From: Selaginella moellendorffii
Taxonomy: Eukaryota > Plantae > Lycopodiophyta
Assembly (NCBI RefSeq): GCF_000143415.4
Contig: NW_003314391.1
Location: 310,001-374,000 of the forward strand
Reading direction: 5' to 3'
DNA length: 64,000 nucleotides
Shown here: piece by piece, positions 15,105-59,000 of the stretch
How positions within the stretch are numbered: the first letter of the stretch is position 1
Layout of the letters: each line of letters starts with the position of its first letter
Program-made: the position numbers and the translations under genes
The notes under the pieces: generated by a model
What the model was told of the DNA's origin: nothing
The model's input: the letters and a program-made list of their open reading frames with translations, nothing else
Database searches by the model: none

Positions 15105-15884
15105 TTGGGGCGGTGTCGGCTCCAGAGAACTTGCGGTGTGCATTGCGCCAGTTCACTCTCAGTTCCGAGGGAGAGTGGCAGACGCATTTTTCCACCGCCA
15201 GCTGCTGATCAAAATCTCACTGTCAGTGTGACTCCACCCTGCAAAAACTGGGAGAAACTCGACTCCGAATTAAGAGAACAAATGGTGGAGGATTGCAGAT
15301 CCGAGCTCCAACAAGCTCCCGAAAGGCAAAGGACAAGAGAATTCACGAGCGAGCAGGCAGAGTTAGACGTTTTCGAGAGAGAGAAGGAAGAAGACACGAC
15401 ACGATCAGTAGCAGCAGCAGCAGCACCGGCCTTGAATTTGGAAACAAGGGAACCTAGGATCACATTTCTTCCGGCGGTGCAAGCAAGTGATAATTACACT
15501 GCTCGAGCTCAGCGGAGCATATCACCACCCAGGAAGTTCGCAAACCCGGCCCTCCTAGGTTCCTTTATTCCCAAACACAAGACAGAAGCCAGAGGTCCGT
15601 GTCTGGATGGATGGATCAAACCAAGAACGGAGTTCTTACAAGTCAAGGCGGCCCCCAACGAGAACAAGTGCTCAAGCGAAAGAAGTCTGATCGAGAAGAA
15701 CCATAGTTCGCAGATCCAGAAGAAGAACAGAAGAAGAAGAAGAAGAAGAAGAAGGAGAAGGAGAAGAAGAAGAAGAAGATCTTCGTTTCGACAAGAGGGA
15801 AGAAGAAGCAGATCTTCGTTTCAATCAACAAGAAGGAAGAAGAACACCAAACAAGAAAGAAGAAAACAAGCAGCAAATAGCTAA
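15105..15884 (+). CDS. Hypothetical ORF (possible last exon of an unknown gene) with Arg-rich end from a GAA microsatellite
   Basis: 259-codon open frame, no recognisable family; possible upstream exons at 14.3-15.0 kb. Confidence 0.3.
   Translation: MGRCRLQRTCGVHCASSLSVPRESGRRIFPPPAADQNLTVSVTPPCKNWEKLDSELREQMVEDCRSELQQAPERQRTREFTSEQAELDVFEREKEEDTTRSVAAAAAPALNLETREPRITFLPAVQASDNYTARAQRSISPPRKFANPALLGSFIPKHKTEARGPCLDGWIKPRTEFLQVKAAPNENKCSSERSLIEKNHSSQIQKKNRRRRRRRRRRRRRRRRRSSFRQEGRRSRSSFQSTRRKKNTKQERRKQAANS
15719..15778. repeat. (GAA)n microsatellite
   Basis: Run of AGAAGAAGA units. Confidence 0.85.
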
Positions 15885-16523
15885 ACACACGATTCAACAG
15901 ACACTGAGGCGACGGATCCTTGCACGCGAACTATTTATCCTCCGGCGAAGATGCTGGCGGTGCAAAGCAGGGGAGGCTCCATCTCCGGCTCTCTGTCTCT
16001 CTTTCACACACAGGGAGAGAAAAGAAAAACTTTCCATATTCATTAAAAAATTGAAGCTCTTACCGTTTCGAGAAAGCCCCTGTTTACGCGACCCGCGCAT
16101 CGAAGCCGTCCATTCTCAGAGAGCTTTCCATTTATATCCATGTCACGTCGCTATCGCCACCATTAAAACCAGCTTCCCGGAGCGCATTACGCTACACTAG
16201 CACCAAAGATTTCCATTTCCTCGCATTGCAATTTTTGAGAGTCAGTGCCACGGCTTCTAGGGTTTTTGTATCCAACGGCAAGCATCACGCCACGTGGAGC
16301 GGCATGAAGGCGCCAGTTAATCTTGTTAACTTTTTGCTTAATCCATTAACCATGGGTTAGTCAGCCTTTTATTTCGCGGATTTATTAATATAAACACCCT
16401 GGAAAACATTTCCCAGGGCCGTGAAATGCAACGAGACGAGAGAGTGACGAGAGAGACGCTCGTTCTTTTTGTTCTTCCTTCTTCCTGTTGCTGCTTTTTC
16501 GTGGCTCCCCGGAGTGATCTTGC

Positions 16524-39955: not shown

Positions 39956-40189
39956 ACTGCTGTGAGACACAAAGTCCCTAGGCCCCAGAGTGGAGCTGGA
40001 GGGGTGCCACGTGGTAGTGGCCGAAGCGAAAGCCAAACGAGCGTAAAACGTTTGGACTAAAAGCTTCGACTTGAAAGGTTGAGAGCGGGAGTGGAACTCC
40101 CAACAAAGTGTTCAAGGAACGAGCACGAAGCGAGCAATAAGCGAGGCTCCAAAAAGGGACCCAAAGAGACCAACACATGACACGTGGAA

Positions 40190-40762
40190 GTGTCTGAGAT
40201 GGACCCGAGTTGGAGTCCGAAGTGGAGTCCGAGATGGAGTCCGAGATGGAGTCCGAGGTGGAGTCCGAGGTGGAGTCCGAGGCGGACCCGAGATGGACCC
40301 GAGATGGAGTCCGAGGTGGAGTCCGAGGTGGACCCGAGATGGACCCGAAATGGAGTCCGAGATGGAGTCCGAGATGGAGTCCGAGATGGACCCGAGATGG
40401 ACCCGAGATGGACCCGAGATGGGACCCGAGATGGACCCGAGACGGAGTCCGAGGCGGACCCGAGACGGAGTTCGAGGTGGAGTCCGAGATGGAGTCCGAG
40501 ATGGACCCGAGATGGAGTCCGAGATAGAGTCCGAGTTGGAGTCCGAGATGGACCCGAGATGGAGTCCAAAGTCGAGACCGGGACCAAGACCGAGACCGGG
40601 ACCGAGACCGAGACCGAGACTGAGATCGGGACCGAGACCGAGACTGAGACCGAGATCGGGACCGAGACCGAGACCGAGGCCGAGCCCAAGTCCAAGTCCG
40701 AGTCCGAGTCCGAGTCCGAGTCCAAGTCCGAGTCCGAGTCCGAGTTCGAGTCCGAGTCCGGA
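40190..40762. repeat. Hexamer/12-mer tandem repeats inside the 5' LTR (GAGTCC/GAGATG/GACCGA); also at 56220-56710
   Basis: Repeated GGAGTCCGAGAT, GGACCCGAGAT, GACCGA and GAGTCC units; copy number differs between the two LTRs. Confidence 0.9.
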
Positions 40763-43700
40763 GCCTGAGAGGGTGAAAGCCCAAAGCGTTCGTCTCCCAG
40801 ACCCTGGGGGGTTTGGTGAGCTCCAAAAGTATAGTAGGGGGAGGACTGCAGTGGAGCTAGTTTGGCCAGGAAAGGTCAGTTTGGCCCAGGAAGGCCGGAC
40901 CCAGTGTTGGGTGATGAGCTGCCCATTGGGAAGTCCAAAACTAGAGTGAACATGGACTGACAAGCGGGGTAGCTTGGTGAAGTGTTCAAGAGCCGGCTCT
41001 AGTTCCCCCGGGAGATCGACTGGCCGATGCTCCCAGTCCAAGTGTGGGTGGCACTACCTACTTGGATACCAGGTGTGGCTCAACGGAACCTCGCTCTAAG
41101 CCCATGGTTAGAGCACCTAAAGGCGAGAGGTGGGGAGAGTACCTAGGTGGCTCGCATAAGGCCACGGTGTTCCGAAATGGTGTCCCAAAGTCCCAGACTG
41201 TGGAAAGGAAGAGGGGTAGCCCTTTGGTGGGGTGACCAAGGACACAGTCACACAGTGAGGAAGTCCTCGAGGATAGTGGGACTTAGTGGTCGGGCCGGTG
41301 GGCCTTGATCCAGTGGCAGTGTTGGCGAACACAGCCAAGGACAGAAAGGGACTTGGTGGGGACCAGAACAGAGATATTGGGGAAGGCTATTCCCCATGTC
41401 TGTAGGCATCCTAAGGAGGTTAAGGAGTGGATCTGGGATGATCCCTCATGGACGGATGACCCAGTCTTTGAGAGACGGGATTGGAATGCAGGTGGTGTTG
41501 GACCACCAGTGTGACCAAGGTAATTGGGCATGGCCTTAGCGTAACGGGCCGATACGTCGGTGGTACCTTGGGGTGTCGATCATGGGATCGGACACGTGGA
41601 GCACTTGGACCAAGTGCTAAGGTTGAGTGGCATGGATGCCATTCTCGGGGCTAGCAAGCCCCAAGTCCTGAGTTGGACTTATGGAGGTTGTGAATGAGAC
41701 TCCTCCAAGTGGTCGGGGGTGTGGTTAAGTGACTAAAATAGAATGGAAAAATTAGTCGCTTACAACTTGGTATCGGAGCCGTTCCTTAGTCCGACTTTTA
41801 TTGGTGCTAAAGTATATCACCATTGATGTTGGCATCGAAAGGTCCTAGGAGTGGGCCTATCCTTGAGGAGTAGCAGGTCGGGAAGACATGGCTCTCCATT
41901 ACAGTTCCTGTGTGAACTTGTAGGTGAGGTGGTGGATAGAAAAGGGCCAATAATGGAACGACTTTGGGATCTTGGGAACAGTATAAGGGTTTCCTCAGAG
42001 AGCTGAGGATGTGATCCAGATGAGCGTTTGATGCAGCAAACGAGCTAATGTAGTTGTGGTAAACAACTATAGTTGGGATCACGAGAAAGATGCAGACTCC
42101 AAAACAATAAAGGAGTCACAAGATTACCCTTATATGGTTGAGGCTGGTACTCATAAATTTGAGTCCGGAATTGTTGACCGTGGGAGGTCAAATACAAAAG
42201 AGGACACTAGTCCTTGAAATGGTAAGCAGGGCTACCTTTAATAAATGCTGGAACAACCCAAGGAGTTGGGGGGTGTACTTAGAGATGAGTTGGTATTCTC
42301 ATCGCATGGACAAGTAGTCATAAGGGGCAAAGGTTGCCCCCAGAGAACAAAATCAAGTGTCAGAGTAACACTTGTGAAAATAGTCCTTTTGAGTAGGACA
42401 GGAATGCAAGAAGTGTATTCCAGTGAGTTAGTGCCTCACAAGTAGGACCTTACGGGTCTGTGGATTAACCAAGTCCAAAACTGCTGGATGACTCAAGTAG
42501 AGTCAAGAGATGGTCCTAAAAGGACCGATGGAAGCATTTGGACTGAGGTGTGTTGTACCCCACAAAAGATGGGGGGGGATCATAAGATCCAAGGATGAGA
42601 GCAAAGGGTATCTTATCGATGGCAAAATGTGCCATGTTAAAGTCGTGGGAAAGGTGTTCCCAAAAAGAAAACAACTTTGACACAAAGTTGTGTGTGACCT
42701 CTATGATGCAGTGTTAACGGATGGTTGGCATGAGAAAGCGTGGTATTGGTCTTGGCAAAGACTTAGACACAAAGAAGAAGTGTCATAGAGGTAGGCTCGT
42801 GGAGCCGATGGTGTGGAGACACCAAATGTGCCAAGGTGTGATACCTTGAGGCTATGTTGGTGGGTTCATGAGAACCCCTTGCCAAAGGAATCCCAATAGA
42901 AATGGGAATGACATAGCCTAAGCTGCAGAGCATGCAGTTGAAGTGTGGTGACCCAGATAATGATGGAGGTGTGGAAGTACCAGCAATGAGTTGTAGGACT
43001 TGACAACTACGAGGCAACTAAGCAAGAGGTGCCAAATAATTGGTTAAACGGGTAGAAGGTAGCTACCCAAGCCTTCTTAATGGCATAGGAAAGTTGGATA
43101 TACCCTTATGGGGGATGAGTTGCTTATGTTGCGATATAGTAAGTCAATGTCATAAAAGGAAATACTCATTGTCAAGGAAGCCGTCATTGGGACACTCGAA
43201 CACTCTAGAACACCAAGAGGTGGTGTTTGATGTCGTGAGGGCAGTAGATAAGGCCCAAGAGACTAAGTCCCTAGCGAACGATGGATAGTAGGTGCTATCC
43301 AAATGTCCAAGGTGGCGAGACAGGAGAAGACTGTCTACTCGAATTGGACAAAGCCAAAAATGGAATTTTGGCAAGGCTAGTGATAGGCATGCAAAGGCCC
43401 GTAAGCAACAACGTAATCCCGGTGTGTGGGATTATAGGGTGAGCATACCTGGGTTGAGGAACCACTCCCTAGGCTATCGGGTAGGTTCATCCCTAAGAAT
43501 ACTTGCTAAGGCATGATAGAAAGTGCAAAGCTATCCTCATGGTTTGGAGGAGAATGACCGAAGGAAAGGTGTGAAGCCAAAAGCAAGAAGTAAGGGGATA
43601 GAACCGAACCATAGGAATTGAAGGGCATAACCAAGGTTGGTTATGCTAGCTGGGAGTGGAGAATCATGTGGGGGCTCGAGGGTGTTACTGCTAGCAACCG

Positions 43701-45577
43701 TGATGCCATGGAGAGTCTAAAATATGGAATTGTCCATGTTAGACTATATGGTAATTGGAAAGCTTGCAAAAAGGGGGGCCTTAGCAAGCTAAGGGACAGA
43801 GTTCCTTCAAAGTTTCCAAAGAGGATTCTAGGTAGCGTAGTACCTAGAAAGGCCAAGCGTAAATGGTTCAAGGAACGCGCGAAATCAGAGTGGCGCAGCA
43901 AAAGCGTGGTCTTGAAGCTTGCCATGAGGCAAGGCTATCAAGGTTAGGGAAGTAGTTCCCGAGTGTTCAAAGAGAAGGCTTTGAACGAAAGTCGATGATT
44001 AAGGGCTTTCACGCTTGTAGGAACCATGTTACAGTGGTCGGAGGACTTGCCAAAGCGAGATTGGCAAGTCAAGGGAACAAATACCCTAGTTGAAGGTGAT
44101 AACTTCAAAAAAGGGTGGGCCATGGGGCCAAGCATGGAGGAGTCAATGCATGATCACAGGCTTGTCAAGTGAGAAGACTTGGCAGTGGGGAGGAACTAGG
44201 TTCCTAAGCTGTGATCTATAGCGCGCTTTAAATATAAGTTGGTGCACCGGCGTGGGGAGTCACGCCAGGCATCCGGTGTGATGCCGTCTGTAGATGCATA
44301 TACGAAGGTTGGGTTCGAGTCCCGACCCTTTAGTGTTTGGGTTCGAGTCCCAAATCACTAGGGCGTGTGGAGAAGGGAGAAAAAGACAAACTCGAGGATT
44401 CAAGCTTAGGAAAGTAAACTTGAGAGGTTCAAGGTTAGGACTGTATTCCTAACCTTGATGTGAGCAGTAGCGACTATAAAAGTAGGACTTAGAATGTTTT
44501 TAGATGGATCCCTAATACAAAATATATTGCAATACATTGTCATTCTGCCTATCTCTTTGGCTTTTCACAGCAATGTCTTACTTACCCACCGCCTTCAAGG
44601 GATCAAAGGTGTGGGACTAGCACCTTCAAGCACTTGTTCACAGTCTCTACTTGGCTTGGCACAAGCAGATAAGTGCACTCATTTCGTAGTGTAATTTTAG
44701 TTTTAGGGACTAAATTAGATTTGAAACTCCTAGGAAGATCTCGTGTGGACGTTTCCTCCCAGTTTAGAGATTTCAGGAGTTTTCACTGGCGACCACGGTG
44801 GGATAGGCGAAGTGAAGAGCACCCAAAGAATGAAGATTGGCAGCCTTGGCTACAACTAGAAGACGAAGCTGAAGTCAAGAATCAAGGGAAAAATCGAAAA
44901 GAAACAAAAAGAAGAAAACAAAACGAAAAAGAAGAAAATCGACAAAATCCTAGAGCAAGAAGCATGGAAATCATGCTAGAGACCAAACGTTTGAAGGCTA
45001 CGATCATCTAGAGATCGCCCACTTCTCGAAAAGTCCAAGAATCTTCCATAACCGCCTCTTGGTGAGAGGTCAAAGACGAAGAATATTCTATGCATCAGAA
45101 TATTTGAAGAATCTCCGACAAAAAAATCAGAGCAAACAAGTGCTAACAAGCATGAAAACATGAAGAATGAAAAAGCACGACTGCCCATTTGGAGACACAA
45201 GCTGTACAAGATACGAAGACTGCCTTTTGTGTGGTTTCAGAAATTGTGCAAAACCGTACAAGCAATGCTATCCAAAATGGCGATGTGACACTTGCAAGCA
45301 AGCAAAAGCAAGACTCCGAATCAAGGATGAAAATGCCACAGCGGAGGAGAGTAGGAAACGAGAAGAAATAGCCCAAGAAAACGACACCAAAAAGAGAAAC
45401 GATAGTTTAGAACAAGCAGCGAAACAAAGCTTTAGTTGCTTACAAAAACTTCAAGAAACAATTCTGCGACTCTTCTACAAATTGTCTAGCAAATAGGAAG
45501 GATGCAAAAATGAGGAAATGTTGAAAGAAAAATATGTTTACTTCGATTTCTTTGCAACTCGAAGAACCCTGACTTAG

Positions 45578-48500
45578 GTGTATCGCGGACACCTCTTTCA
45601 ACAAACGATTGTTGAATTTCTAGGCATACACAAACATGAAACTTTTCAACCATTAACGCTTGCTTTCAATACTGATTTGACGAGAGTCATAGCAGCAACA
45701 GAGTGTGGAATTTTTGAACCACAAGTTCGTTGGTTTGTGGACACTCTTAAATTTAGAGATTTCGAAGAGAACGCGGAATTACTTTATCGGCTTCTTCAAA
45801 GTCCTCTCCGTGTAACGCTACCAACAAACACTCTTATCGAATTATATGCTATAGCATATTGGCACCGTTTAGGACAGACGAGAATAGCTGGAGAATTAAA
45901 GGACGCCCTGGATGACCTCAAGGACGACAAGATGCCAGGGGAGGACGGCATGCCACCAGCCTTCTACAAACAAAACTGGGATTGGATCGGACCAGAAGTT
46001 CTCAAGATGTGGCAAGAAACCATGCGAGCTGGAAAGTGGCCAGAAGGAGCTACGGATGGGATCATTGCGCTGATACCAAAAAAAGGAGATATGTCCCACC
46101 TCAAGAACTGGAGGCCCATCTCTATGCTGAACACCATGTACAAGATCGTAGCAAAAGCCTTGGCATCACGCCTCAAGCCTCTACTCCCAGAAACGATCAA
46201 GGAGACGCAGAACGGGTTCGTGGAGGGTAGGCAAATCGTGGACAATCTCCTAACAGTGCTGCTGGCGCAAGAACACACCAAAGACATGGCAGAGCAGATT
46301 ACAATCATTCTCCTGGACTTTGAAAAAGCTTACGACCGGGTGGATTGGAAAGTTCTCCAGGCCATAATGATCAAGCAAGGAGTTCCTCTGCAGTTTGTGG
46401 AATGGACAGCATCCCTGTACCACTCGGCATCGAGCAGGGTTACGATCAATGGAACCATGGGACAGTCCTTCAAACTTGAAAGATCAGTCCGCCAAGGATG
46501 CCCCCTCGCACCATACCTGTTCCTGTTTGTTGCAGATGCTCTGGCCTACTACCTCGCCCGACCACAGGGTCCAAAAGGTATGCCCCTTCCAGGCTGCGGC
46601 GCCGCGCTTCAGGACATGAACCAAGCCTCAAAGGAGGACCTCCTATCCTCAGCCTTTGCAGACGACACAAGCCTGATCGTGGAGGGATCACCGGAGAACC
46701 TCTCAAGCGTCAAAAGGGACCTGGACTTTTTCAATGAGGCCATGGGATCGAGAATAAACTGGCACAAATCGGTAGGACTATGGCTCCCCCCCAGCAGACC
46801 TCCAACATGGGGCACGGAGCTGGGCTTCAAATGGCTGGACACGGAGGAGACCACCCGCTACCTTGGATTCCAAGTGGGACGCCAGTATGATCCAGAACCC
46901 CAGAACCAAAAAGCAGTAACAAAACTAAGGGATCAACTCAAGTTCTGGGCGAGCAGAAAACTATCGTTCTCAGCACGCTGCGTGGTGGCTAACAGCATCC
47001 TACTTGGAGCGATCTGGTTCCTGGCAGCATGCTGGAACATGGACAAGCGAACGATCCAGGAAATGAACCAACTCATTCGAACCTATGTCTGGAAAGGCTC
47101 CTCCTGCGTGTCGCGTGGTGGAGCAAAGGTCAACTGGCGGTCAGTAACACTTCCGAAGCACGAAGGTGGCCTCAATATTATTGACATCGAAGAACAATGC
47201 AAGGCTCTTCTCTTCAAAATTTTCACAAGGATGCTCATGCCTGGCCACCAACCATGGAGAATACTGCTGCGAGCACAATTTTTGAAAGTCCTCCCGGACA
47301 GGAACGAGCACACCAGACAAAACTGGGCGCCAGACGAACAATGGCTCTTCTCAGACACCAAACTCAAAATGACAAAGGCTCACACGTTCTCAGGAAAGCT
47401 GTTCAAGCTCTGGAGGCAATTCAAGTGCAAGCTGGAACGTAAACCACCTCGTACCAAAGAACAACTGGACCGGCAGCCAATTTTCCTAAGCAAACTCTTC
47501 GCTGTCAACGGTAAAACGCTCGGAGCTTCAGAGGATCGTGGCCTGGACCAGACATGCAGAGACCTGCACAGAGCAGGGATGAGAACCTTCGCAGAGGCAG
47601 ACACCATGATCCAGCCCAACCAGACGGCCCACAATCGCGACCGCATCAGTACTTTCTACGGATTAACCATCTCAGAACACAGGATGCGTAAATTCCAGAC
47701 AGCCTTTTTAGCAGCCAAACACGCATGCCTTGAACGACTAAACCTGCAAGAGGATCAACACCATCGTTGGTGGAAGCTGGACGAATCGATCGTATGCACC
47801 CTCCCCAACATGGCATCGGGACTAGTCTTCAAGGCAGGACAGGCTGGACGCTTGTACCCCATCGTTACCCCCGAGTACGAGGACCTCCCCGACATGAGTA
47901 GGGCCAAACCGATCAGAGTGATTCAAATGGAGAAAAAAACTGCCAACGTTGATCCACTGATCCCAAAAAACCAATATGCCCGCCTCTACTGGTTCCGCCA
48001 ACAAACCCTGGACGAACTCAAGTGGGATCCTGCAGAGTGGCATTGGAGGGGAACCACGTGCAAGGACTTCTTCCAGTACGAGACCAAGCTGGGCCGCAAG
48101 CTGATCAGGGTGCCAACTCGATCCTCCCTCATCCGGAAAGCAAAGGCCCAACAGATCCGTTCCAGGAACCACTCACACTGCATCAACAAGATCTGGAAAG
48201 GGTGCTGGTCAGCTAAGAACCGCTACTTCATGTGGCTGGCCCAACAAGAACGTCTTCCCTCCCTGGTCGCCATACATCTTCCGAACACAGCCTGCAAGAC
48301 CTGTGGCGCCACAGAAACACAGCGACACATCTTATGGGAATGTCCGGCAGCACAGGAAGTATGGGAAGGTGCAGCAGCGGTGCTCAAACAAACGTCAACC
48401 GGAGGAGCTGCAATCACATACGAATCAGCGCTCTGGGGTAGCTTCATCCAAGGAAAGACAAAGAATCCTGATGCATGGAAGTGGAGACACAATGAGGCCC

Positions 48501-48967
48501 CACACTTTGATCAACTCAACCAAACTCGGACACACATTACGCACCTCCACCAGGAGCTCTTTGATGCGCTTCGGGGATGCACACTAGCAGAGATATGGAA
48601 GGCTCGCTGCGCCAGGCTGTTCCAGGACACGGACCCCTCGGCTCGAGCAACTATCTCAAAGGTTTGGTCCAGACTGATCGTCTCACTCGCGGCCCGCCTG
48701 GACACGCTGATCAAACGAGGCGAGGAAGGGAAGATAGCGAAGGAGAAGAAGCTGTGGCCGTTTTTTAGAGGAAGAAGCGAGGCTGGCGAAGAAGAATGGA
48801 CGTGGAAGCCACCAATATGGATTTGGCAGCACATGTTCAGGAACGAAAGCACGTGTACCTCCCCGAGTCGACAGAGTTCCACATCAGGAACTTCGGAAGC
48901 TTGTAGCTCAGACATCACGGACTCGAGTACCAGTTCTACTTCGTCCCCCTCGTCCCACCCCCCCTAA
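45578..48967 (+). CDS. L1/Tx1-type LINE ORF2 (RT + zf-RVT), 5'-truncated (no endonuclease), in frame with ~105 unrelated upstream codons; no ATG at the ORF start
   Basis: KMPGEDG, IALIPKKG..NWRPISMLN..YKIVAK, QNGFVEGR, LDFEKAYDRV, VRQGCPLAP, FADD, RYLG, CKTCG..ETQRHILWEC. LINE homology starts at ~45893. Confidence 0.9.
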   Translation: MYRGHLFQQTIVEFLGIHKHETFQPLTLAFNTDLTRVIAATECGIFEPQVRWFVDTLKFRDFEENAELLYRLLQSPLRVTLPTNTLIELYAIAYWHRLGQTRIAGELKDALDDLKDDKMPGEDGMPPAFYKQNWDWIGPEVLKMWQETMRAGKWPEGATDGIIALIPKKGDMSHLKNWRPISMLNTMYKIVAKALASRLKPLLPETIKETQNGFVEGRQIVDNLLTVLLAQEHTKDMAEQITIILLDFEKAYDRVDWKVLQAIMIKQGVPLQFVEWTASLYHSASSRVTINGTMGQSFKLERSVRQGCPLAPYLFLFVADALAYYLARPQGPKGMPLPGCGAALQDMNQASKEDLLSSAFADDTSLIVEGSPENLSSVKRDLDFFNEAMGSRINWHKSVGLWLPPSRPPTWGTELGFKWLDTEETTRYLGFQVGRQYDPEPQNQKAVTKLRDQLKFWASRKLSFSARCVVANSILLGAIWFLAACWNMDKRTIQEMNQLIRTYVWKGSSCVSRGGAKVNWRSVTLPKHEGGLNIIDIEEQCKALLFKIFTRMLMPGHQPWRILLRAQFLKVLPDRNEHTRQNWAPDEQWLFSDTKLKMTKAHTFSGKLFKLWRQFKCKLERKPPRTKEQLDRQPIFLSKLFAVNGKTLGASEDRGLDQTCRDLHRAGMRTFAEADTMIQPNQTAHNRDRISTFYGLTISEHRMRKFQTAFLAAKHACLERLNLQEDQHHRWWKLDESIVCTLPNMASGLVFKAGQAGRLYPIVTPEYEDLPDMSRAKPIRVIQMEKKTANVDPLIPKNQYARLYWFRQQTLDELKWDPAEWHWRGTTCKDFFQYETKLGRKLIRVPTRSSLIRKAKAQQIRSRNHSHCINKIWKGCWSAKNRYFMWLAQQERLPSLVAIHLPNTACKTCGATETQRHILWECPAAQEVWEGAAAVLKQTSTGGAAITYESALWGSFIQGKTKNPDAWKWRHNEAPHFDQLNQTRTHITHLHQELFDALRGCTLAEIWKARCARLFQDTDPSARATISKVWSRLIVSLAARLDTLIKRGEEGKIAKEKKLWPFFRGRSEAGEEEWTWKPPIWIWQHMFRNESTCTSPSRQSSTSGTSEACSSDITDSSTSSTSSPSSHPP

Positions 48968-49054
48968 AAATCTTGAAGAGCTCTTTCCCGGTTTCGAGCG
49001 TGTCGAAATCGGACTCTATGGTTTATAGAGGCTAAACTAAATAAAACCCCATTG
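45893..49054 (+). mobile_element. 5'-truncated non-LTR retrotransposon ending at a 26S rDNA target sequence
   Basis: RT ORF, ~87-nt 3' UTR with stem-loops, no poly(A); followed directly by ACAAAGTCGGACTAGA (49055-49070). Confidence 0.85.
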
Positions 49055-49070
49055 ACAAAGTCGGACTAGA

Positions 49071-50707
49071 AAGTTTAGCGAGAAGAGGAGCGCCTTGAGA
49101 GTCGACTTTCGTGCTTGATCCAGAGTAGGAGTAGGACTAGGAGAGCAATAAGGACGATGCTGAGAGCAAGCCGTGCCTTGGTTTCACTGGATTTGCATGT
49201 TCCATGAGCGAGAAAGCGTCAAGAGTACTCTTTTAGTCACTGCAAGCTCTCCACATGGATTTCCCACGATTCCTTTTCACGGCTGGAGAGAGCACATCCC
49301 CACGATCATTCTGAGTCCAAGAACAGGCGATTTGGAGCCAGGAATCAGGAGATCAAGGCGACCCTATCTCTGGTGGCGGCTAGGGTTATGGACGACCTAG
49401 GGATTGCGGCGGCGGCTGAACCACGTACCTTTTCACTGATTGCAACGGTGGGAAGATAGATCCTCCGAAGGAGCACACGCCAGCAAAACTTCGTGGCAAT
49501 CCAACGGTTCACGAGCAAGATCCAAACGTTCAAATTTCGGAACATGGTTCAAGTTGGGGGCTTTGGAGTCCACGGTTGCTGGAACTTCTTCCAAGGACAC
49601 TAGCTGCACAGAACCTCATCGGCAGCGTCCTTCCTTCCTCATTCACTTGGGGTTCGGAGTTTTGGGGTCCGGAGAGCCAAGCTCCACCTAAGGAGGGGAC
49701 AACTCGCTTGGCGCCGGTACGGCTGCTCGTTTGAATATGCAAAGGACACTATTCTCCGACACGCACCGGGTCCTTCAAACTACGTGGCAGCACTTCCCTA
49801 CCCTCCGATTGTACACCTAGTCCCAATCGGCAAAGGAACAACTTTCGACGGCACACTGAAGTCCCAATTTGTACGGTACAGCTGTGTTGGCTGATCCCTT
49901 TCTTGCCTTGGTTGTGGATCCACCATGATCAAGGCACTCGGAGCAACGCCATTTGATGCATGGGATGTTTCGAGGGGCACGGCTCGTGTCAGAAGCTGCA
50001 TCAGGCTAGCTTGTTGGAGTACGGAAACGTAGCTTCAACCCGGATCCGAAAGGAGCGGCTCGCCTTTGGTTGTGATTCCAGATGGATAGCGCCAAGGGTA
50101 CGGCTACACTGGTATGAGGCCGTGGGACTGGCGTGGCGGCACTACACTTGCACGGCCTGATGGGAGGCTGGAAACAGCAATCCCAGTTGGAGGGGATCAG
50201 TCACACAGCAGCGAGGAGAGGACTCCCAGGCAGCAGCAGCATCACCATTACCGGAGACGGCACACTCCTCCTCAGTTCACCGCACTGTGGGATCCAGGAC
50301 AGTACATCTCCAGGGGCTTCTTATATCTCTGGAAAACTGTAGGCGTCATACAGATGGAGATCAAGCAAGGGCGGTGTACCTTCACTGATCTCACGATCGA
50401 CTCAAGTCCTTCACATCTGTAGATGCAACCACATGGGAGAGATGAGGCTGGGGACCATGGATAAGGCGCGAAGTTCACCACCACTACGGATAGGGAGCAC
50501 GCGTTTGCGGAGTGAGTGGCATGGCTTTGGGCAGCACAGAACCGGACACTAGTTCCTTGATCTGATCTGCACAGAACCGAACCGCACTCTAGTTCTAGGG
50601 ATCCTCCCCTCTTCTCAACCCCCCCATATGCTCTTTGCCAGTTTCGAGCATGTCGAAACTGGACCTCTATGGTTTTTCAAGAGGATAAATATGAAAAGCC
50701 CCCATTG
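49071..50707 (+). mobile_element. Non-autonomous 1.64-kb retroelement, copy 1 (LINE-related 3' tail)
   Basis: Flanked on both sides by rDNA-derived 16-17-nt repeats; 3' tail homologous to the LINE 3' UTR; no long ORF. Confidence 0.8.
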
Positions 50708-50724
50708 ACAAAGTCGGACTAGAG

Positions 50725-52373
50725 GGAGAAAACCCTAAGTTTAGCGAGAAGAGGAGCGCCTTGAGAGTCGACTTTCGTGCTTGATCCAGAGTAGGAGTAG
50801 GACTAGGAGAGCAATAAGGACGATGCTGAGAGCAAGCCGTGCCTTGGTTTCACTGGATTTGCATGTTCCATGAGCGAGAAAGCGTCAAGAGTACTCTTTT
50901 AGTCACTGCGAGCTCTCCACATGGATTTCCCACGATTCCTTTTCACGGCTGGAGAGAGCACATCCCCACGATCATTCTGAGTCCAAGAACAGGCGATTTG
51001 GAGCCAGGAATCAGGAGATCAAGGCGACCCTATCTCTGGTGGCGGCTAGGGTTATGGACGACCTGGGGATTGCGGCGGCGGCTGAACCACGTACCTTTTC
51101 ACTGATCGCAACGGTGGGAAGATAGATCCTCCGAAGGAGCACACGCCAGCAAAACTTCGTGGCAATCCAACGGTTCACGAGCAAGATCCAAACGTTCAAA
51201 TTTCGGAACATGGTTCAAGTTGGGGGCTTTGGAGTCCACGGTTGCTGGAACTTCTTCCAAGGACACTAGCTGCACAGAACCTCATCGGCAGCGTCCTTCC
51301 TTCCTCATTCACTTGGGGTTCGGAGTTTTGGGGTCCGGAGAGCCAAGCTCCACCTAAGGAGGGGACAACTCGCTTGGCGCCGTTACGGCTGCTCGTTTGA
51401 ATATGCAAAGGACACTATTCTCCGACACGCACCGGGTCCTTCAAACTACGTGGCAGCACTTCCCTACCCTCCGATTGTACACCTAGTCCCAATCGGCAAA
51501 GGAACAACTTTCGACGGCACACTGAAGTCCCAATTTGTACGGTACAGCTGTGTTGGCTGATCCCTTTCTTGCCTTGGTTGTGGATCCACCATGATCAAGG
51601 CACTCGGAGCAACGCCATTTGATGTATGGGATGTTTCGAGGGGCACGGCTCGTGTCAGAAGCTGCATCAGGCTAGCTTGTTGGAGTACGGAAACGTAGCT
51701 TCAACCCGGATCCGAAAGGAGCGGCTCGCCTTTGGTTGTGATTCCAGATGGATAGCGCCAAGGGTACGGCTACACTGGTATGAGGCCGTGGGACTGGCGT
51801 GGCGGCACTACACTTGCACGGCCTGATGGGAGGCTGGAAACAGCAATCCCAGTTGGAGGGGATCAGTCACACAGCAGTGAGGAGAGGACTCCCAGGCAGC
51901 AGCAGCATCACCATTACCGGAGACGGCACACTCCTCCTCAGTTCACCGCACTGTGGGATCCAGGACAGTACATCTCCAGGGGCTTCTTATATCTCTGGAA
52001 AACTGTAGGCGTCATACAGATGGAGATCAAGCAAGGGCGGTGTACCTTCACTGATCTCACGATCGACTCAAGTCCTTCACATCTGTAGATGCAACCACAT
52101 GGGAGAGATGAGGCTGAGGACCATGGATAAGGCGCGAAGTTCACCACCAGTACGGATAGGGAGCACGCGTTTGCGGAGTGAGTGGCATGGCTTTGGGCAG
52201 CACAGAACCGGACACTAGTTCCTTGATCTGATCTGCACAGAACCGAACCGCACTCTAGTTCTAGGGATCCTCCCCTCTTCTCAACCCCCCCATATGCTCT
52301 TTGCCAGTTTCGAGCATGTCGAAACTGGACCTCTATGGTTTTTCAAGAGGATAAATATGAAAAGCCCCCATTG
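50725..52373 (+). mobile_element. Non-autonomous 1.65-kb retroelement, copy 2
   Basis: About 8 substitutions versus copy 1; ~12 nt longer at the 5' end (GGAGAAAACCCT, giving a telo-box); flanked by ACAAAGTCGGACTAGAG. Confidence 0.8.
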
Positions 52374-52380
52374 ACAAAGT

Positions 52381-52420
<40 letters not shown>

Positions 52421-52425
52421 GATTC

Positions 52426-52477
<52 letters not shown>

Positions 52478-52478
52478 T

Positions 52479-52561
<83 letters not shown>

Positions 52562-52595
52562 ACCGTTTACCCGCGCTTGGTTGAATTTCTTCACT

Positions 52596-52629
<34 letters not shown>

Positions 52630-53095
52630 CGTCAACATCCGCAGGGACCATCGCAATGCTTTGTTTTAATTAAACAGTCGGATTCCCCTTGTCCGTTCCA
52701 GTTCTGAGTCGGTTGTTCGATGCCTAGGGAATGCCCCCCGCGGGGAGGGGCGTTCTGCGTCCGTCACCAGGTCGGCACGCCGGGGCCCGCCCTCGCCGCG
52801 CAAGCAGCTCGGGCAGACCGCCAGCAGCCTACAGGGTCAAGCTGCAGACCCCTAAGCCCAACCCTCAGAGCCAATCCTTTTCCCGAAGTTACGGATCCAT
52901 TTTGCCGACTTCCCTTACCTACATTGTTCCATCGACTAGAGGCTGCTCACCTTGGAGACCTGATGCGGTTATGAGTACGACCGGGCAAGCTCAGCACTCG
53001 CTCCTCCAGATTTTCAAGGACCGCCGGGGGCGCACCGGACACCGCAGGACGTGCGGTGCTCTGCCGGCCGTGAGACCCTATCTCCGGTTGAACCG
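52374..53095 (-). rRNA. 26S (LSU) rRNA gene fragment, orphan and non-functional
   Basis: Reverse complement of conserved LSU rRNA: GTCAAGCTCAACAGGGTCTTCTTTCCCCGCTGATT, CTAATTAGATGACGAGGCATTTGGCTACCTTAAGAGAGTCATAGTTAC, TTTCCCGAAGTTACGGATCCATTTTGCCGACTTCCCTT. Confidence 0.95.
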
Positions 53096-56000
53096 AGACA
53101 ACAATACAAGTATCAACAACCAGATAATTTGGAAGAACAAGATCACGATGATGAACTGGAAATTATCCCAGAAACCGAATGGAAGAAAAGCAAGAAAATA
53201 CATAAAGCAATTCAAGCTGAATTGCAAGCACAAGATCCAGAAACAATCAAAGAACACGACAAACAATCAAACAATCAAGAAACAAGAAGTTTTACCCAAG
53301 AGGAGCTGGTACCTGTTCAGCAGAAAGAAAAGTTTCATGTGGAAGAGCAAGCTGAAGCAAGGTTGAAGCAAAACCTGGTGGAAGATGAACAGCCTGATCA
53401 GATTGAGCAACCAGCAGAAGAAGACGAAGACCTGCAGTGGATAAAGGAGTTTCAGACGCAGGAACTTGAGGTGGTGCTTCCGAAGTTTTGTGAGCAGACG
53501 GAGCAGAAGAAAAATTCAGTGCCAAAGTTTGACGTGGAATAGGCAGCAGCTGGTCAAGCTGGCTTGGAGCAGAAAGCTGTTGTGAAGAAGAAAGAAGAAG
53601 ATGTTAGACAACAAAGAGGTGTAGAAGTTCAGAACCTTGTGGAGCAGCCATCAAGAGGAGCCGTATACCCAGGCCAAAGTTTGAACTTGAAGGTGGCTGG
53701 TGTGAAGTTGGTGAAGAGACGAGGAAGTGTGTTTCTCAGGTTCTGGTGGGACAGAGGCAAGCTGGTTGCATCCTTTGTAGCTCTGTAGGAGTAGAGGAAG
53801 TAAGTAGTAAAGCAGCAAAACTGAAAGCCGTCCAGGAGAAGTTGTGGCTGTTTCAAGTCGGATGTTTAAAGTTTCGAGAAGAGGCGTTTGTGCAACTGAT
53901 CTCGGGAAGAAGCTGGTCAAATTCAGATCACAAGACTTTGAGGAAGCAGCTCAGACTTATAAAGAGGAGGAAGAGGAGGAGGAGCCACATGAGGGAGCAG
54001 CTACCCACGATGCAGCAATGGAGCAGTGACTGCGGGACGCAGCACAAGGCAGTCGTGGGAGAGTGGAGAAGGTAGAAAAAGACAAGCTCGAGGATTCAAG
54101 CTTAGGAAAGTAAACTTGAGAGGTTCAAGGTTAGGACTGTATTCCTAACCTTGACGTGAGCAGTAGCGACTATAAAAGTAGGACTTAGAATGTTTTTAGA
54201 TGGATCCCTAATACAAAATACATTGCAATACATTGTCATTCTACCTATCTCTTTGGCTTTTCACAGCAATGTCTTACTTACCCACCGCCTTCAAGGGATC
54301 AAAGGCGTGGGACTAGCACCTTCAAGCACTTGTTCACAGTCTCTACTTGGCTTGGCACAAGCAGATAAGTGCATTCATTTCGTAGTGTAGTTTTAGTTTT
54401 AGGGACTAGATTAGATTTGAAACTCCTAGGAAGATCTCGTGTGGACGTTTCCTCCCAGTTTAGAGATTTCAGGAGTTTTCAGCGTGGTGATGGTTTGGAA
54501 TATGAGGACACTCATATTTCGGTGGTCATGGACTCTCAGTGGGGAAACTGGTTTGGGCACACCGCCAAGCGAAGGATGCCTCGGAGTCGTGATGCACGGT
54601 TAGATTGCTTAGTGTGAAAGCTCAGCATATCTAACTTGAACGCTTTGGTGCAAGTGGCACCAAGGACGTGGTGAGTGAGATGGGGACACCTAATCTCAGT
54701 TGCTATGAACCCTTGGCCATAAGGGTTGGCTTGGGTGCACCGCCAAGTGTGGGGGATGCCCCCGGGGTTATAGTCAACAATTTGAAGGTCTAGAAGACCT
54801 AGTACCTATTGGCAAACTTGTTAAGGTGCCGAGGTGAGATCACTAGGTGATCTTGTGGCTAAATAAGGACAATGTCTTTGTTTGGGTTAAGGAATAAGGT
54901 TCCTAGTTCAAAGTGTTGATTTGAACTATTGGTGATGGTGTGGCTTGGTCAAGGTGACCAAGTGGGAAAAGCACCTTAGGGAAGTAAGCTATGTCATTGC
55001 GATGGCATAGTGTGAGCAAGGAAAGTAGTCTCTATAAGAGACCCATGGGAGGGTCACAAGTTAGGCCGTGGATAGAGCCCACAGCAGAAGGTGCCAAAGA
55101 GACTTACTAGGGGTGAACACCCTAGTCTTGGCAAAGCAAAGCCTTTGCTATGGAATCAAAGGAATACCTCAAAGAGGGAGGTAGACATTCGGTGTTGCTG
55201 GGTGCAACAATCAACGGATAGGAGCAAAAGATGAGTGGCCAGGATAGGGCCGTGGAATCCCTTGGAAGGAATCCAAGTGGCAAAGTTAGGCGAGGAACAC
55301 TAATGTGTTGGACGCTAACAAATTGCGGGAAAAGAAGTGTGTTTCCAAGGATGGATTCCGAATTGCTCCGATTTGGCAAAAGTGGAAGCTCCAAGGGAGG
55401 GAGCAGTAAGGTAGCCAAATGATAGGGCCATGGACAGCCCTAGCACAAAGTATGATAAATGGAACTTAGTGCCCAAGGTGGCACGAAATAGAAGAGAGGA
55501 TGATGGTGCCCTCAAGTAATGAACTTCCTAGGATGGGGAAGTGGAGTTGCACAATCGGTGCAATGCAAGGTGTTGGAGACACCTAGGAAATTGACTTCCA
55601 AAAGTCAAAAGGGTAAAAGTTTCAAGGTGCAAAACATTCAATAGATGGAAATTGAAATTACTCTAGAAGGAGTAGTGGGATTGACGTAGAGAAGGGTCTC
55701 TAAGAGGTTTAGCGGGAACTAAACCAATAAAAGGAGAGAACCACTACATGTGGTCCAATCAGTCTCTAAGTTGGAGAAACTACCCTCCTTAGAGGATGGG
55801 CAAGGCATGGTGAGCCTTTGGTGTCAAACCATTGAGGAATATGCAAAAGGCATGGTGAGCCTTCAATGTCAAACCCTTGACAAATATTGGCTAGGTGCCA
55901 AGGATGGAAATGGTAACACATGCGGGTGCTACTTTATAAAATGGTTTACCGTTCGATGAGGACATCGAACTTCGTCTATGGGTGGTGGAGTTGTGAGACA

Positions 56001-59000
56001 CAAAGTCCCTAGGCCCCAGAGTGGAGCTGGAGGGGTGCCACGTGGTAGTGGCCGAAGCGAAAGCCAAACGAGCGTAAAACGTTTGGACTAAAAGCTCCGA
56101 CTTGAAAGGTTGAGAGCGGGAGTGGAACTCCCAACAAAGTGTTCAAGGAACGAGCACGAAGCGAGCAATAAGCGAGGCTCCAAAAAGGGACCCAAAGAGA
56201 CCAACACATGACACGTGGAAGTGTCCGAGATGGACCCGAGTTGGAGTCCGAAGTGGAGTCCGAGATGGAGTCCGAGATGGAGTCCGAGATGGAGTCCGAG
56301 GTGGAGTCCGAGGTGGAGTCCGAGGCGGACCCGAGATGGACCTGAGATGGAGTCCGAGGTGGAGTCCGAGGTGGACCCGAGATGGACCCGAAATGGAGTC
56401 CGAGATGGAGTCCGAGATGGACCCGAGATGGAGTCCGAGATGGAGTCCGAGATGGACCCGAGATGGACCCGAGATGGGACCCGAGATGGACCCGAGACGG
56501 AGTCCGAGGCGGACCCGAGACGGAGTCCGAGGTGGAGTCCGAGATGGAGTCCGAGATAGAGTCCGAGTTGGAGTCCGAGATGGACCCGAGATGGAGTCCA
56601 AAGTCGAGACCGGGACCAAGACCGAGACCGGGACCGAGACCGAGACCGAGACCGAGATCGGGACCGAGAACGAGGCCGAGCCCAAGTCCGAGTCCGACTC
56701 CGAGTCCGGAGCCTGAGAGGGTGAAAGCCCAAAGCGTTCGTCTCCCAGACCCTGGGGGGTTTGGTGAGCTCCAAAAGTATAGTAGGGGGAGGACTGTAGT
56801 GGAGCCAGTTTGGCCAGGAAAGGCCAGTTTGGCCCAGGAAGGCCGGACCCAGTGTTGGGTGATGAGCTGCCCACTGGGAAGTCCAAAACTAGAGTGAACA
56901 TGGACCGACAAGTGGGGTAGATTGGTGAAGTGTTCAAGAGCCGGCTCTAGTTCCCCCGGGAGATCGACTGGCCGATGCTCCCATTCCAAGTGTGGGTGGC
57001 ACTACCTACTTGGATACCAGGCGTGGCTCAACGGAACCTCGCTCTAAGCCCATGGCTAGAGCACCTAAAGGCGAGAGGTGGGGAGAGTACCCAGGTGGCT
57101 CACATAAGGCCACGGTGTTCCGAAATGGTGTCCCAAAGTCCCAGACTGTGGAAAGGAAGAGGGGTAGCCCTCTGGTGGGGTGACCAAGGACACAGTCACA
57201 CAGTGAGGAAGTCCTCGAGGATAGTGGGACTTAGTGGTCGGGCCGGTGGGCCTTGATCCAATGGCAGTGTTGGCGAACACAGCCAAGGATAGAAAGGGAC
57301 TTGGTGGGGACCAGAACAGAGATATTGAGGAAGGCTATTCCCCATGTCTGTAGGCATCCTAAGGAGGTTAAGGAGTGGATCTGGGATGATCCCTCATGGA
57401 CGGATGACCCAGTCTTTGAGAGACGGGATTGGAATGCAGGTGGTGTTGGACCACCAGTGTGACCAAGGTAATTGGGCATGGCCTTAGCGTAACGGGCCGA
57501 TATGTCGGTGGTACCTTGGGGTGTCGATCATGGGATCGGACACGTGGAGCACTTGGACCAAGTGCTAAGGTTGAGTGGCATGGATGCCATTCTTGGGGCT
57601 AGCAAGCCCCAAGTCCTGAGTTGGACTTATGGAGGTTGTGAATGAGACTCCTCCAAGTGGTCGGGGGTGTGGTTAAGTAACTAAAGTAGAATGGAAAAAT
57701 TAGTCGCTTACAACTGCGTCCCTAGCAAATGATGGATAGGAAGTGCTATCCAAATGTCTAAGGTTGCGGAGATGGGAGAAGTCCGTCTACCCGAATTGAA
57801 CAAAGCCAAAAATTGATTTTAGCAAGGCTAGTGATAGGCATATAAAGGCTCATAAGTAACAATGTTAATTCTGATATATAAGATTATAAAGTGTAGCACA
57901 CGTGGTTTTGACCCTTTATCCTATGGTGATTTACCATAGGATAACACCATGAAGCGGAACCTAAATTCTTTTTGTGCCACGTGACAGATGCCACGTGTCA
58001 CATGCCACGTGTCTATGCCACGTGTCCATAGGAACCCGAGGTTCAGGGCCTTGGGCCACAAAACAAAGGAACGGTGCCAAACTCCCAAGCATGGAGCCAA
58101 GGAGTGACGGAACCGAACCACAGAGCAACTCCCAAGCATAAAGCCCAAGGAGCGAAAGGACAGGAGCCCGAAGCAACTTGGAACAGTCCTAGAGTAACCA
58201 GCATCCCAATGCTAGGACTAGCACGCAAAACGGAGCCAAACGAAGTCTAGCGCTATTTCAGCATACTGGTGGCCTAATGCGAGGACATGGGTACTCTACC
58301 AGCTAGCATGGAATGGAACTTGGGCTTAGACCCAAGCCGGACGCAGAACAAAGACAGGCACGCAAGCGGGAGCTAGACTATGCCTCAGGTTGGTCAGCCA
58401 TGCTCGACCTACCCACTATCCCTACTATACATTTGGAACCCCCCAAAGCCAGCCCCCCCCCTGAGGAACACACGCTTTGGGCTTTCACCCCAAGCCTCCC
58501 TTAGTATCAGAAGTTAGTCTCTAGGACAAGCTCGAAACTTACCAAATATGGAATGTCTTTAAATTGCGAATTTGGACACAGGACGAACACCATTGTGTTC
58601 AAGCCAATCTCTACATTCCGTAGATATGCCAAATGAGCAAATCTGGACACTTTCCATAAATAGCATTTGGGACTGAAATAAGACTAACACAAAGGGCATG
58701 ATAGCGAGGGTGTTTGGCAGACACAGTAAGCTATCATCTAGTGATATTGAGGGACCAATCTCAATATCACGGGGGTTCTTGATACTAGCAAGTGCAAGAC
58801 AATGACACAAGTTTCTCAAACCAGGCCGAGTATGCTCAACAAGAAACACATAGGGTTCCTACCTTATGTTTATCCAATCTAAGTGCATGTTCATTGACCA
58901 GTTTCTCAACTAGCTCAAGTGGTAAACTGATAATGGGTCCAGCAATACCGACCTCCTGCCATCGTGGCAGTAAGGAAAGAATATCCGAAAGGACTAGCCG

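Follow-up and report, generated by a model that had tools for sequence, protein, structure and literature searches.

A non-coding element sharing both termini with a 26S rDNA-targeting LINE in Selaginella moellendorffii

A head-to-tail stack at one position of the 26S rRNA gene

The subject of this study is a stack of mobile elements within a 64,000-nucleotide stretch of DNA of the lycophyte Selaginella moellendorffii (contig NW_003314391.1, positions 310,001 to 374,000 of the forward strand). We refer to this whole stretch as the window and number all coordinates from its first letter unless another locus is named. The stack comprises a long interspersed nuclear element (LINE) of a family designated F1 and two copies of a non-coding unit, here called partner A, all at the same target in the 26S ribosomal RNA gene. 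A reading of the sequence, together with a repeat finder applied to positions 48000-53000, gave the order on the plus strand as LINE, 16-mer, unit, 16-mer, unit, 16-mer and antisense 26S, with the elements arranged head to tail.

The F1 copy occupies positions 45887..49054 on the plus strand. Its open reading frame (ORF; 45578-48967, plus strand, with the stop codon at 48965-48967) has matches to RVT_1 and zf-RVT, no apurinic/apyrimidinic endonuclease (APE) domain was found in this copy, and the closest protein relative of the ORF product is an S. moellendorffii protein of 86% identity. At the DNA level the LINE is 96% identical to two copies at another locus, L001 (5143-8325 and 9313-12497), and as this match begins at window position 45887 we conclude that the window copy is 5'-truncated. 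The LINE ends in a tail (48975..49054, plus strand; 102.6 bits with our tail covariance model) composed of a GCTCTTT motif, two hairpins, an A-rich spacer and a terminal CCCCATTG, with no poly(A). Partner A copy 1 (49071..50707, plus strand, 1,637 nt, with its tail at 50630-50707) lacks an AAACCCT leader, and copy 2 (50724..52373, plus strand, 1,650 nt), which is 99.5% identical to it, is headed by 13 extra letters, GGGAGAAAACCCT, at 50724-50736, the remainder of the unit lying at 50737-52373.

The 16-mer ACAAAGTCGGACTAGA follows directly upon each of the three tails (49055..49070, 50708..50723 and 52374..52389, all plus strand), three matches where 0.01 would be expected by chance. The third copy runs straight into a fragment of the large-subunit (25S/26S/28S) rRNA gene at 52390..~53093 on the minus strand, such that the LINE and the partner units are oriented antisense to the rRNA. 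A minus-strand match to Rfam LSU_rRNA_eukarya covers 52428-52931 of the window and model positions 1891-2388, and the fragment is 93% identical to positions 15334-16069 of a further locus, L004, in which the 26S extends further. In the window the 26S spans only ~700 bp, so there is no intact rDNA unit. Because the 16-mer is itself antisense 26S sequence, we interpret it as a target-site duplication. Approximately a dozen more junctions with this target, with 0-3 mismatches, were found in S. moellendorffii at L001 and L007, two overlapping loci of scaffold GL377636.1, and at L004, on scaffold GL377582.1. The system thus has the hallmark of R elements: repeated insertion at one position of an rRNA gene with a constant duplication. 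Some F1 copies lie outside rDNA, so the site preference is strong rather than absolute.

A full-length F1 (L007 9241-17626, the same copy as the one that ends at L001 8325) encodes ORF1 and an ORF2 with Exo_endo_phos and RVT_1, which identifies F1 as an APE-type, L1/Tx1-like LINE. It starts with AGAGGGATGGAAACCCTAGGCG (L007 from 9241), behind three degenerate copies of the target. The 5' junctions of full-length LINEs carry two to three such degenerate 15-16-nt targets in a row (L007 9194-9240; L001 12483-12521), spaced by 1-9 letters (C, A or CGAGAGAGG), and these rows may represent extremely 5'-truncated insertions or a stutter at the 5' junction. The F1 copies outside rDNA (loci L003, L005 and L006) end in CCCCATTGACAA(AG) and continue into unrelated flanks, with ACAA(AG) standing after CCCCATTG at L003 11249-11254, L005 10996-10999 and L006 11677-11682; the copy in L006 carries its own 10-bp duplication. 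The ACAA(AG) ends of these copies indicate that the template RNA bears target-derived letters at its 3' end. Such letters could pair with the nicked target, a mechanism that has been proposed for other site-specific APE-type LINEs. A LINE at locus L002 was considered and found not to belong to this system, as it is a different LINE outside rDNA, without the target site and without DNA similarity to the block described here.

Partner A and the termini that it shares with F1

Partner A is represented by a third copy at L007 7562-9193, 97.6% identical to those of the window, where it has an F1 tail on one side and the start of the full-length F1 on the other. The 5' junctions of these copies are not alike: the two window copies have 0 and 13 extra letters, respectively, and the junction in L007 differs again (CAGACTAGA followed by GAGAGGAAACCCT). 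We also aligned the contigs of four public sequencing runs to window positions 48600-50736, and in contigs from two of them (X1 and X17) partner A stands behind a different LINE tail, of the type of a second LINE family described below (...GGCCCCGTTTA plus the target), with junction inserts of 17 nt (GAGAGAAAAAAAACCCT) and 10 nt (GGAGAACCCT). In sum, partner A was observed in three upstream contexts and with five or more different 5' junctions, which indicates independent insertions with the target-site features of the LINE. As judged from the junction sequences, this variation is the pattern expected of target-primed reverse transcription.

Partner A shares only its termini with F1. The unit matches the full-length F1 over ~10-17 nt at its 5' end and over ~80-100 nt at its 3' end, leaving a body of ~1.5 kb unmatched, and the full-length F1, including its 5' untranslated region (UTR) and ORF1, held no partner sequence beyond the termini in searches with blastn (word size 7) and tblastx. 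The longest ORF with an ATG start comprises 102 amino acids in the window copies and 143 in the L007 copy; a Pfam search of the partner A ORFs gave no match, and an exact-protein look-up of the 102-residue ORFs matched no called gene anywhere. An Rfam search of partner A at E up to 1 identified neither a tRNA, 5S or 7SL head nor a ribozyme, the sole match (E 0.84) being at chance level. The initial annotation had seen no LINE homology and no long ORF in the body, and had proposed a tblastx comparison to determine whether the body is a decayed LINE; it bears no translated similarity to the full-length F1. From the sequence comparisons we conclude that the partner copies are young and non-coding and that the 1.65-kb unit is an independent element rather than the UTR of a single LINE family, since target duplications stand on both sides of the units, the junctions vary, a third copy exists, the unit occurs in other LINE contexts, the full-length F1 lacks it and it is non-coding.

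The shared 5' end was not part of the initial annotation. Partner A and the full-length F1 both start with (GG)AAACCCTA(A/G)G (window 50724-50745; L007 9241-9262 and 7549-7570), the common portion being GGAAACCCTA, and at the 5' end of the partner this takes the form of variable purine-rich extras followed by AAACCCTAAGTTTAGCG. The 13-nt leader of copy 2 can accordingly be read as purine-rich extras plus the AAACCCTAAG start, whereas copy 1 begins at AAGTTT without the shared start and is therefore slightly 5'-truncated. The AAACCCTAA within the shared start is known in plants as the telo box, a cis element characteristic of genes that are active in cycling cells and located in their 5' region (PMC3022908), and it is feasible that this telo-box-like start may act as an internal promoter element.

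At the 3' end, partner A and F1 are 80% identical over ~80 nt. Hairpin 1 was found exactly as first described: the LINE has it at 48988-49012 and the partner copies at 50638-50662 and 52304-52328, each time as a stem of 10 bp that closes a loop of 5 nt. From LINE to partner, its pair 3 goes from G-C to A-U and its pair 4 from G-U to G-C. The second hairpin (CTCTAT/ATAGAG at 49014-49030 in the LINE, CCTCT/AGAGG at 50664-50684 in the partner), the terminal CCCCATTG of both tails and the absence of poly(A) from both likewise agree with the initial annotation. RNAfold placed hairpin 1 in the minimum free energy and centroid structures of all three window tails, with z-scores of -1.7 (LINE tail) and -3.1 (partner tail).

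Most of the sequence words of the partner are present in 20 listed public runs from seven studies, the majority of which are small assemblies (20-57 million letters) that we guess to be RNA-seq. Runs X1 and X6 contain contigs of 1.5-1.9 kb over the partner with depths above 100, and those of run X16, at most ~520 nt long, have depths of roughly 1,600-2,300. One X1 contig of 1,860 nt stops at position 50702, 5 nt short of the partner end, and continues into Illumina adapter, which hints at the end of a discrete molecule; we do not rely on this, as contigs cannot fix the ends of an RNA.

A second partner with the tail of a second LINE family

Beyond what the initial annotation had reported, we identified a second partner, whose tail is of the type found in another LINE family. 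This family, F2, is represented by a 5'-truncated piece at L001 8326-8980, whose tail ends in GGCCCCGTTTA before the same 16-bp target. The stack at L004 comprises an F1, an F1 fragment, another F1, an element that we call partner B, and antisense 26S. Partner B (L004 13289-15347, 2,059 nt) is non-coding, its longest ORF encoding 78 amino acids. It is related to partner A, with 75% identity over the first ~60 nt and 58-59% identity in an internal block of ~240-290 nt, and a comparison with the LINE bodies revealed no similarity to any of them. Partner B also contains an internal tandem duplication of ~300 bp (L004 13447-13747 and 13784-14083; 77% identical) and a second GCTCTTT plus hairpin 1 module upstream of its tail, at L004 15233-15273. 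A third LINE family is present in L001 from position 12522.

Comparison of the tails in pairs gave the highest identities between each partner and one LINE family: 80% for A and F1 and 77% for B and F2, versus 62% for F1 and F2, 63% for F1 and B, 65% for A and F2, and 66% for A and B. The tail of B is thus of the F2 type. On the strength of these identities the non-coding lineage is in two branches, each with a tail that matches a different LINE family, as would be expected if the LINE machinery reads the tail, and we regard this matching as the strongest comparative indication that the tail may be the functional link between partner and LINE. A search of 217 kb of sequence with the tail covariance model gave no tails besides those already known.

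To examine the hairpin across these lineages we used an alignment of 12 tails (A1: nine F1 copies, A, F2 and B) and a second alignment of six lineage-representative rows (A2), which includes the extra copy of the hairpin inside B. RNAalifold recovered the whole of hairpin 1 from A1, and the helix is kept across the four tail lineages, with 90% of cells paired as compared with at most 57% in slid controls. For the F2 tail alone, RNAfold predicted a stem of 9 bp with a 5-nt loop. Three pairs of the stem have changed on both sides: columns 15-38, from C-G to U-A in F2; columns 16-37, from G-C to A-U in A and independently in a dead copy, F1_L005; and columns 23-30, from A-U to U-A (a transversion pair) in F2 and B. 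Three other pairs vary by wobble, and the six rows of A2 give the same picture of covariation as A1. The motifs GCTCTTT, GTTT and CCC..TT are invariant in all four lineages. We consider the helix of hairpin 1 to be well conserved and probably real, and its covariation, which the initial annotation had emphasized on the basis of the window copies, to be suggestive and not significant.

The block of LINE, partners and 26S has its borders at ~45887-45893 and ~53093, and it is bracketed by direct repeats of 425 bp (44361-44785 and 54057-54481; 97% identical). We considered whether these might be long terminal repeats, but a target duplication was not seen, TG...CA ends were not clear and the other loci examined held no copy. 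Further out, a repeat of ~1.8 kb with internal tandem arrays of 12-bp period lies at 39961-41770, a span that takes in 40190-40770, and at 55990-57715; it occurs in L002, L003 and L006 as well and belongs to an unrelated dispersed repeat family.

Proposed mobilization by the LINE, alternatives and known systems

With the anatomy of the elements, the independent copies, the restriction of sharing to the termini, the matching of tail type to LINE family and the persistence of the hairpin all observed, we consider it likely that partner A is a non-autonomous, non-coding retroposon copied by the proteins of the 26S-rDNA-targeting, L1-type F1 LINE. The partner RNA would start at the LINE's own AAACCCTA(A/G)G motif, possibly by means of the telo-box-like internal promoter, and would end in the shared ~80-nt tail, in which GCUCUUU is followed by two hairpins (the first of 9-10 bp with a loop of 5 nt, the second with UGGUUU as its loop) and then by an A-rich spacer and CCCCAUUG. 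As in the case of stringent LINEs, the ORF2 protein may recognize this tail in trans. The junction sequences suggest that its APE endonuclease would nick the sense strand of the 26S after ...GACTTTGT, whereupon the 3' end of the RNA, able to carry the target-derived ACAAAG, would sit on the nick and be reverse-transcribed. A second nick 16 bp upstream would then yield the 16-bp duplication and restore the landing site. As each insertion leaves a usable target on its 26S side, head-to-tail stacking would follow.

Several points weigh against this explanation or against parts of it. The number of double-change pairs was unexceptional in a shuffle control (212/500 in A2; 73/500 in the other count), and the covariation is drawn from four lineages, too few for significance. 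F1 and partner A taken alone differ by a single double change, and this G-C to A-U change, the one stressed in the initial annotation, amounts to two CpG transitions, one per arm; because there is a CpG on both arms and the change recurs in the decayed F1_L005, it can arise neutrally by decay of methylated CpG. In addition, a contig from run X16 has a G>A change at position 50661 that disrupts pair 2 of hairpin 1. Partner B is known from a single decayed copy, and the LINE family that moves partner A need not be F1. The public runs are guessed to be RNA, and their contigs are compatible with transcription without being proof of it. Finally, we infer the mobilization of the partner in trans by the LINE reverse transcriptase, the recognition of the tail by protein and the role of the promoter. 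The proposal that the unit is a non-coding parasite of an rDNA-targeted reverse transcriptase is upheld as regards an independent non-coding element, and is favored as a reading as regards how it moves.

Among the alternatives, we give some weight to the idea that the LINE machinery moves the partner and reads primary motifs (GCUCUUU, UGGUUU and CCCC(A/G)UU) or relies on pairing of ACAAAG, rather than reading the hairpin. The invariance of GCTCTTT, GTTT and CCC..TT in the four tail lineages would fit, as would the target letters that the RNA appears to carry, judging from the CCCCATTGACAA(AG) ends of F1 outside rDNA, and the statistically indecisive covariation. We nevertheless hold this to be unlikely, as the stem survives two-sided changes at three pairs and the length of the loop stays at 5 nt in F1, A and F2 despite a differing inner stem. 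Lower in our estimation stands the idea that the 1.65-kb unit descends as a remnant from an autonomous element, whether by decay of a LINE or by internal deletion within F1, the latter as in the short internally deleted elements (SIDEs) that accompany R2, in which, as here, both termini are common to the autonomous element (PMC3414825). Copies that are 97.6-99.5% identical and have no long ORF count against it, the nucleotide and translated similarity to F1 stops at the termini even when its 5' UTR and ORF1 are included, and partner B, also non-coding, is homologous to A and to no LINE; a remnant is thus quite improbable.

It is least of all probable that both window units arose at the DNA level, by tandem duplication of one chance insertion through unequal crossing-over at the 16-bp repeats, with no actively mobilized family behind them. 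The window copies are indeed adjacent and 99.5% identical, and the repeated 16-mers would favor unequal exchange; however, their 5' junctions differ by 13 nt, and unequal exchange alone does not explain the copies in L007, X1 and X17 with their other junctions and upstream neighbors.

Returning to mobilization by the LINE, a broader extension of it may be put forward tentatively, and we rate it as rather doubtful: that a long-lived non-coding retroposon lineage has co-diversified with rDNA-homing L1-type LINEs in lycophytes, with A keeping the F1 tail and B the F2 tail, and that the shared telo-box-like start launches both LINE and partner, allowing their expression despite a position antisense to rDNA. 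If this were true, it would provide a tractable plant system for studying the specificity of LINE-RNA recognition and targeted insertion. LINE and partner pairs with a structured shared 3' tail are the main evidence on how stringent LINEs choose their template, and plant examples are few. In the present system the landing site is fixed, the tails of two or more LINE families can be told apart and there are two matching non-coding partners, and this combination lends itself to natural swap experiments on tail recognition. It is also feasible that the 5' start and the ~80-nt tail could serve as a compact RNA cassette for targeted insertion at a safe-harbor-like plant rDNA site.

Three kinds of known system invite comparison. 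One is the stringent type of LINE/SINE pair, of which UnaL2/UnaSINE1 of eel is an example. In maize, LINE1-1_ZM of the L1 clade shares a 3' stem-loop, with compensatory changes, with the short interspersed nuclear elements (SINEs) ZmSINE2 and ZmSINE3 and with sorghum SINEs (Ohshima, 2012, PMC3472496); an L1/SINE pair of Chlamydomonas is also known, three plant pairs being given in all (PMC3472496). The S. moellendorffii pair resembles such stringent pairs in that the 3' terminus of an L1-clade LINE, and nothing else coding, is shared, in a probable hairpin whose compensatory changes are suggestive and in the lack of poly(A). It differs in that the partner has no tRNA, 5S or 7SL head, is 1.65 kb long and shares the 5' start of the LINE, and in that both elements are specific for one position of 26S rDNA, in a lycophyte host. 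A SINE in the strict sense has a head derived from tRNA, 5S or 7SL RNA, an internal RNA polymerase III promoter and a length below ~600 bp. Partner A is not a SINE by this definition. The initial description of a LINE/SINE-like pair does not apply in that strict sense; with neither a polymerase III or small-RNA head nor a short length, partner A comes nearer to SIDEs or to long retroposons that are non-coding.

SIDEs, the R2 and R2/R1 parasites of Drosophila rDNA (Eickbush and Eickbush, 2012, PMC3414825), provide the second comparison. Like them, partner A is non-autonomous, has the 5' and 3' ends of the autonomous element, uses the same rDNA site with the same duplication and varies at its 5' junction in the manner of target-primed reverse transcription. 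A SIDE is a short derivative that arose by deletion, bears at its 5' end a ribozyme similar to that of hepatitis delta virus and is co-transcribed with 28S, whereas the elements described here are antisense to the rRNA, had no Rfam ribozyme match and have a 1.6-kb body unrelated to the LINE, so that partner A would not appear to be a SIDE built solely from the LINE's own parts.

The third system is from the same host genus. The PLE-X elements of Selaginella, Penelope-like elements (PLEs) of the Chlamys group, target 28S rDNA and were reported as the first plant rDNA-specific transposable element (Craig et al., 2021, PMC8557442). They too insert at one exact position of the large-subunit rRNA gene, and they differ in belonging to the PLE class with no identified endonuclease; in the portions of that article available to us, a non-autonomous partner is not mentioned. 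Our full-text literature searches returned no account of LINEs specific for rDNA, or of partners to them, in Selaginella, and in the searchable literature site-specific rDNA elements of plants were reported only as that Penelope-like element (PMC8557442). The F1 LINE and partner A are most likely a plant instance of the pairing of a parasite with its own parasite that is already known from animals and from maize.

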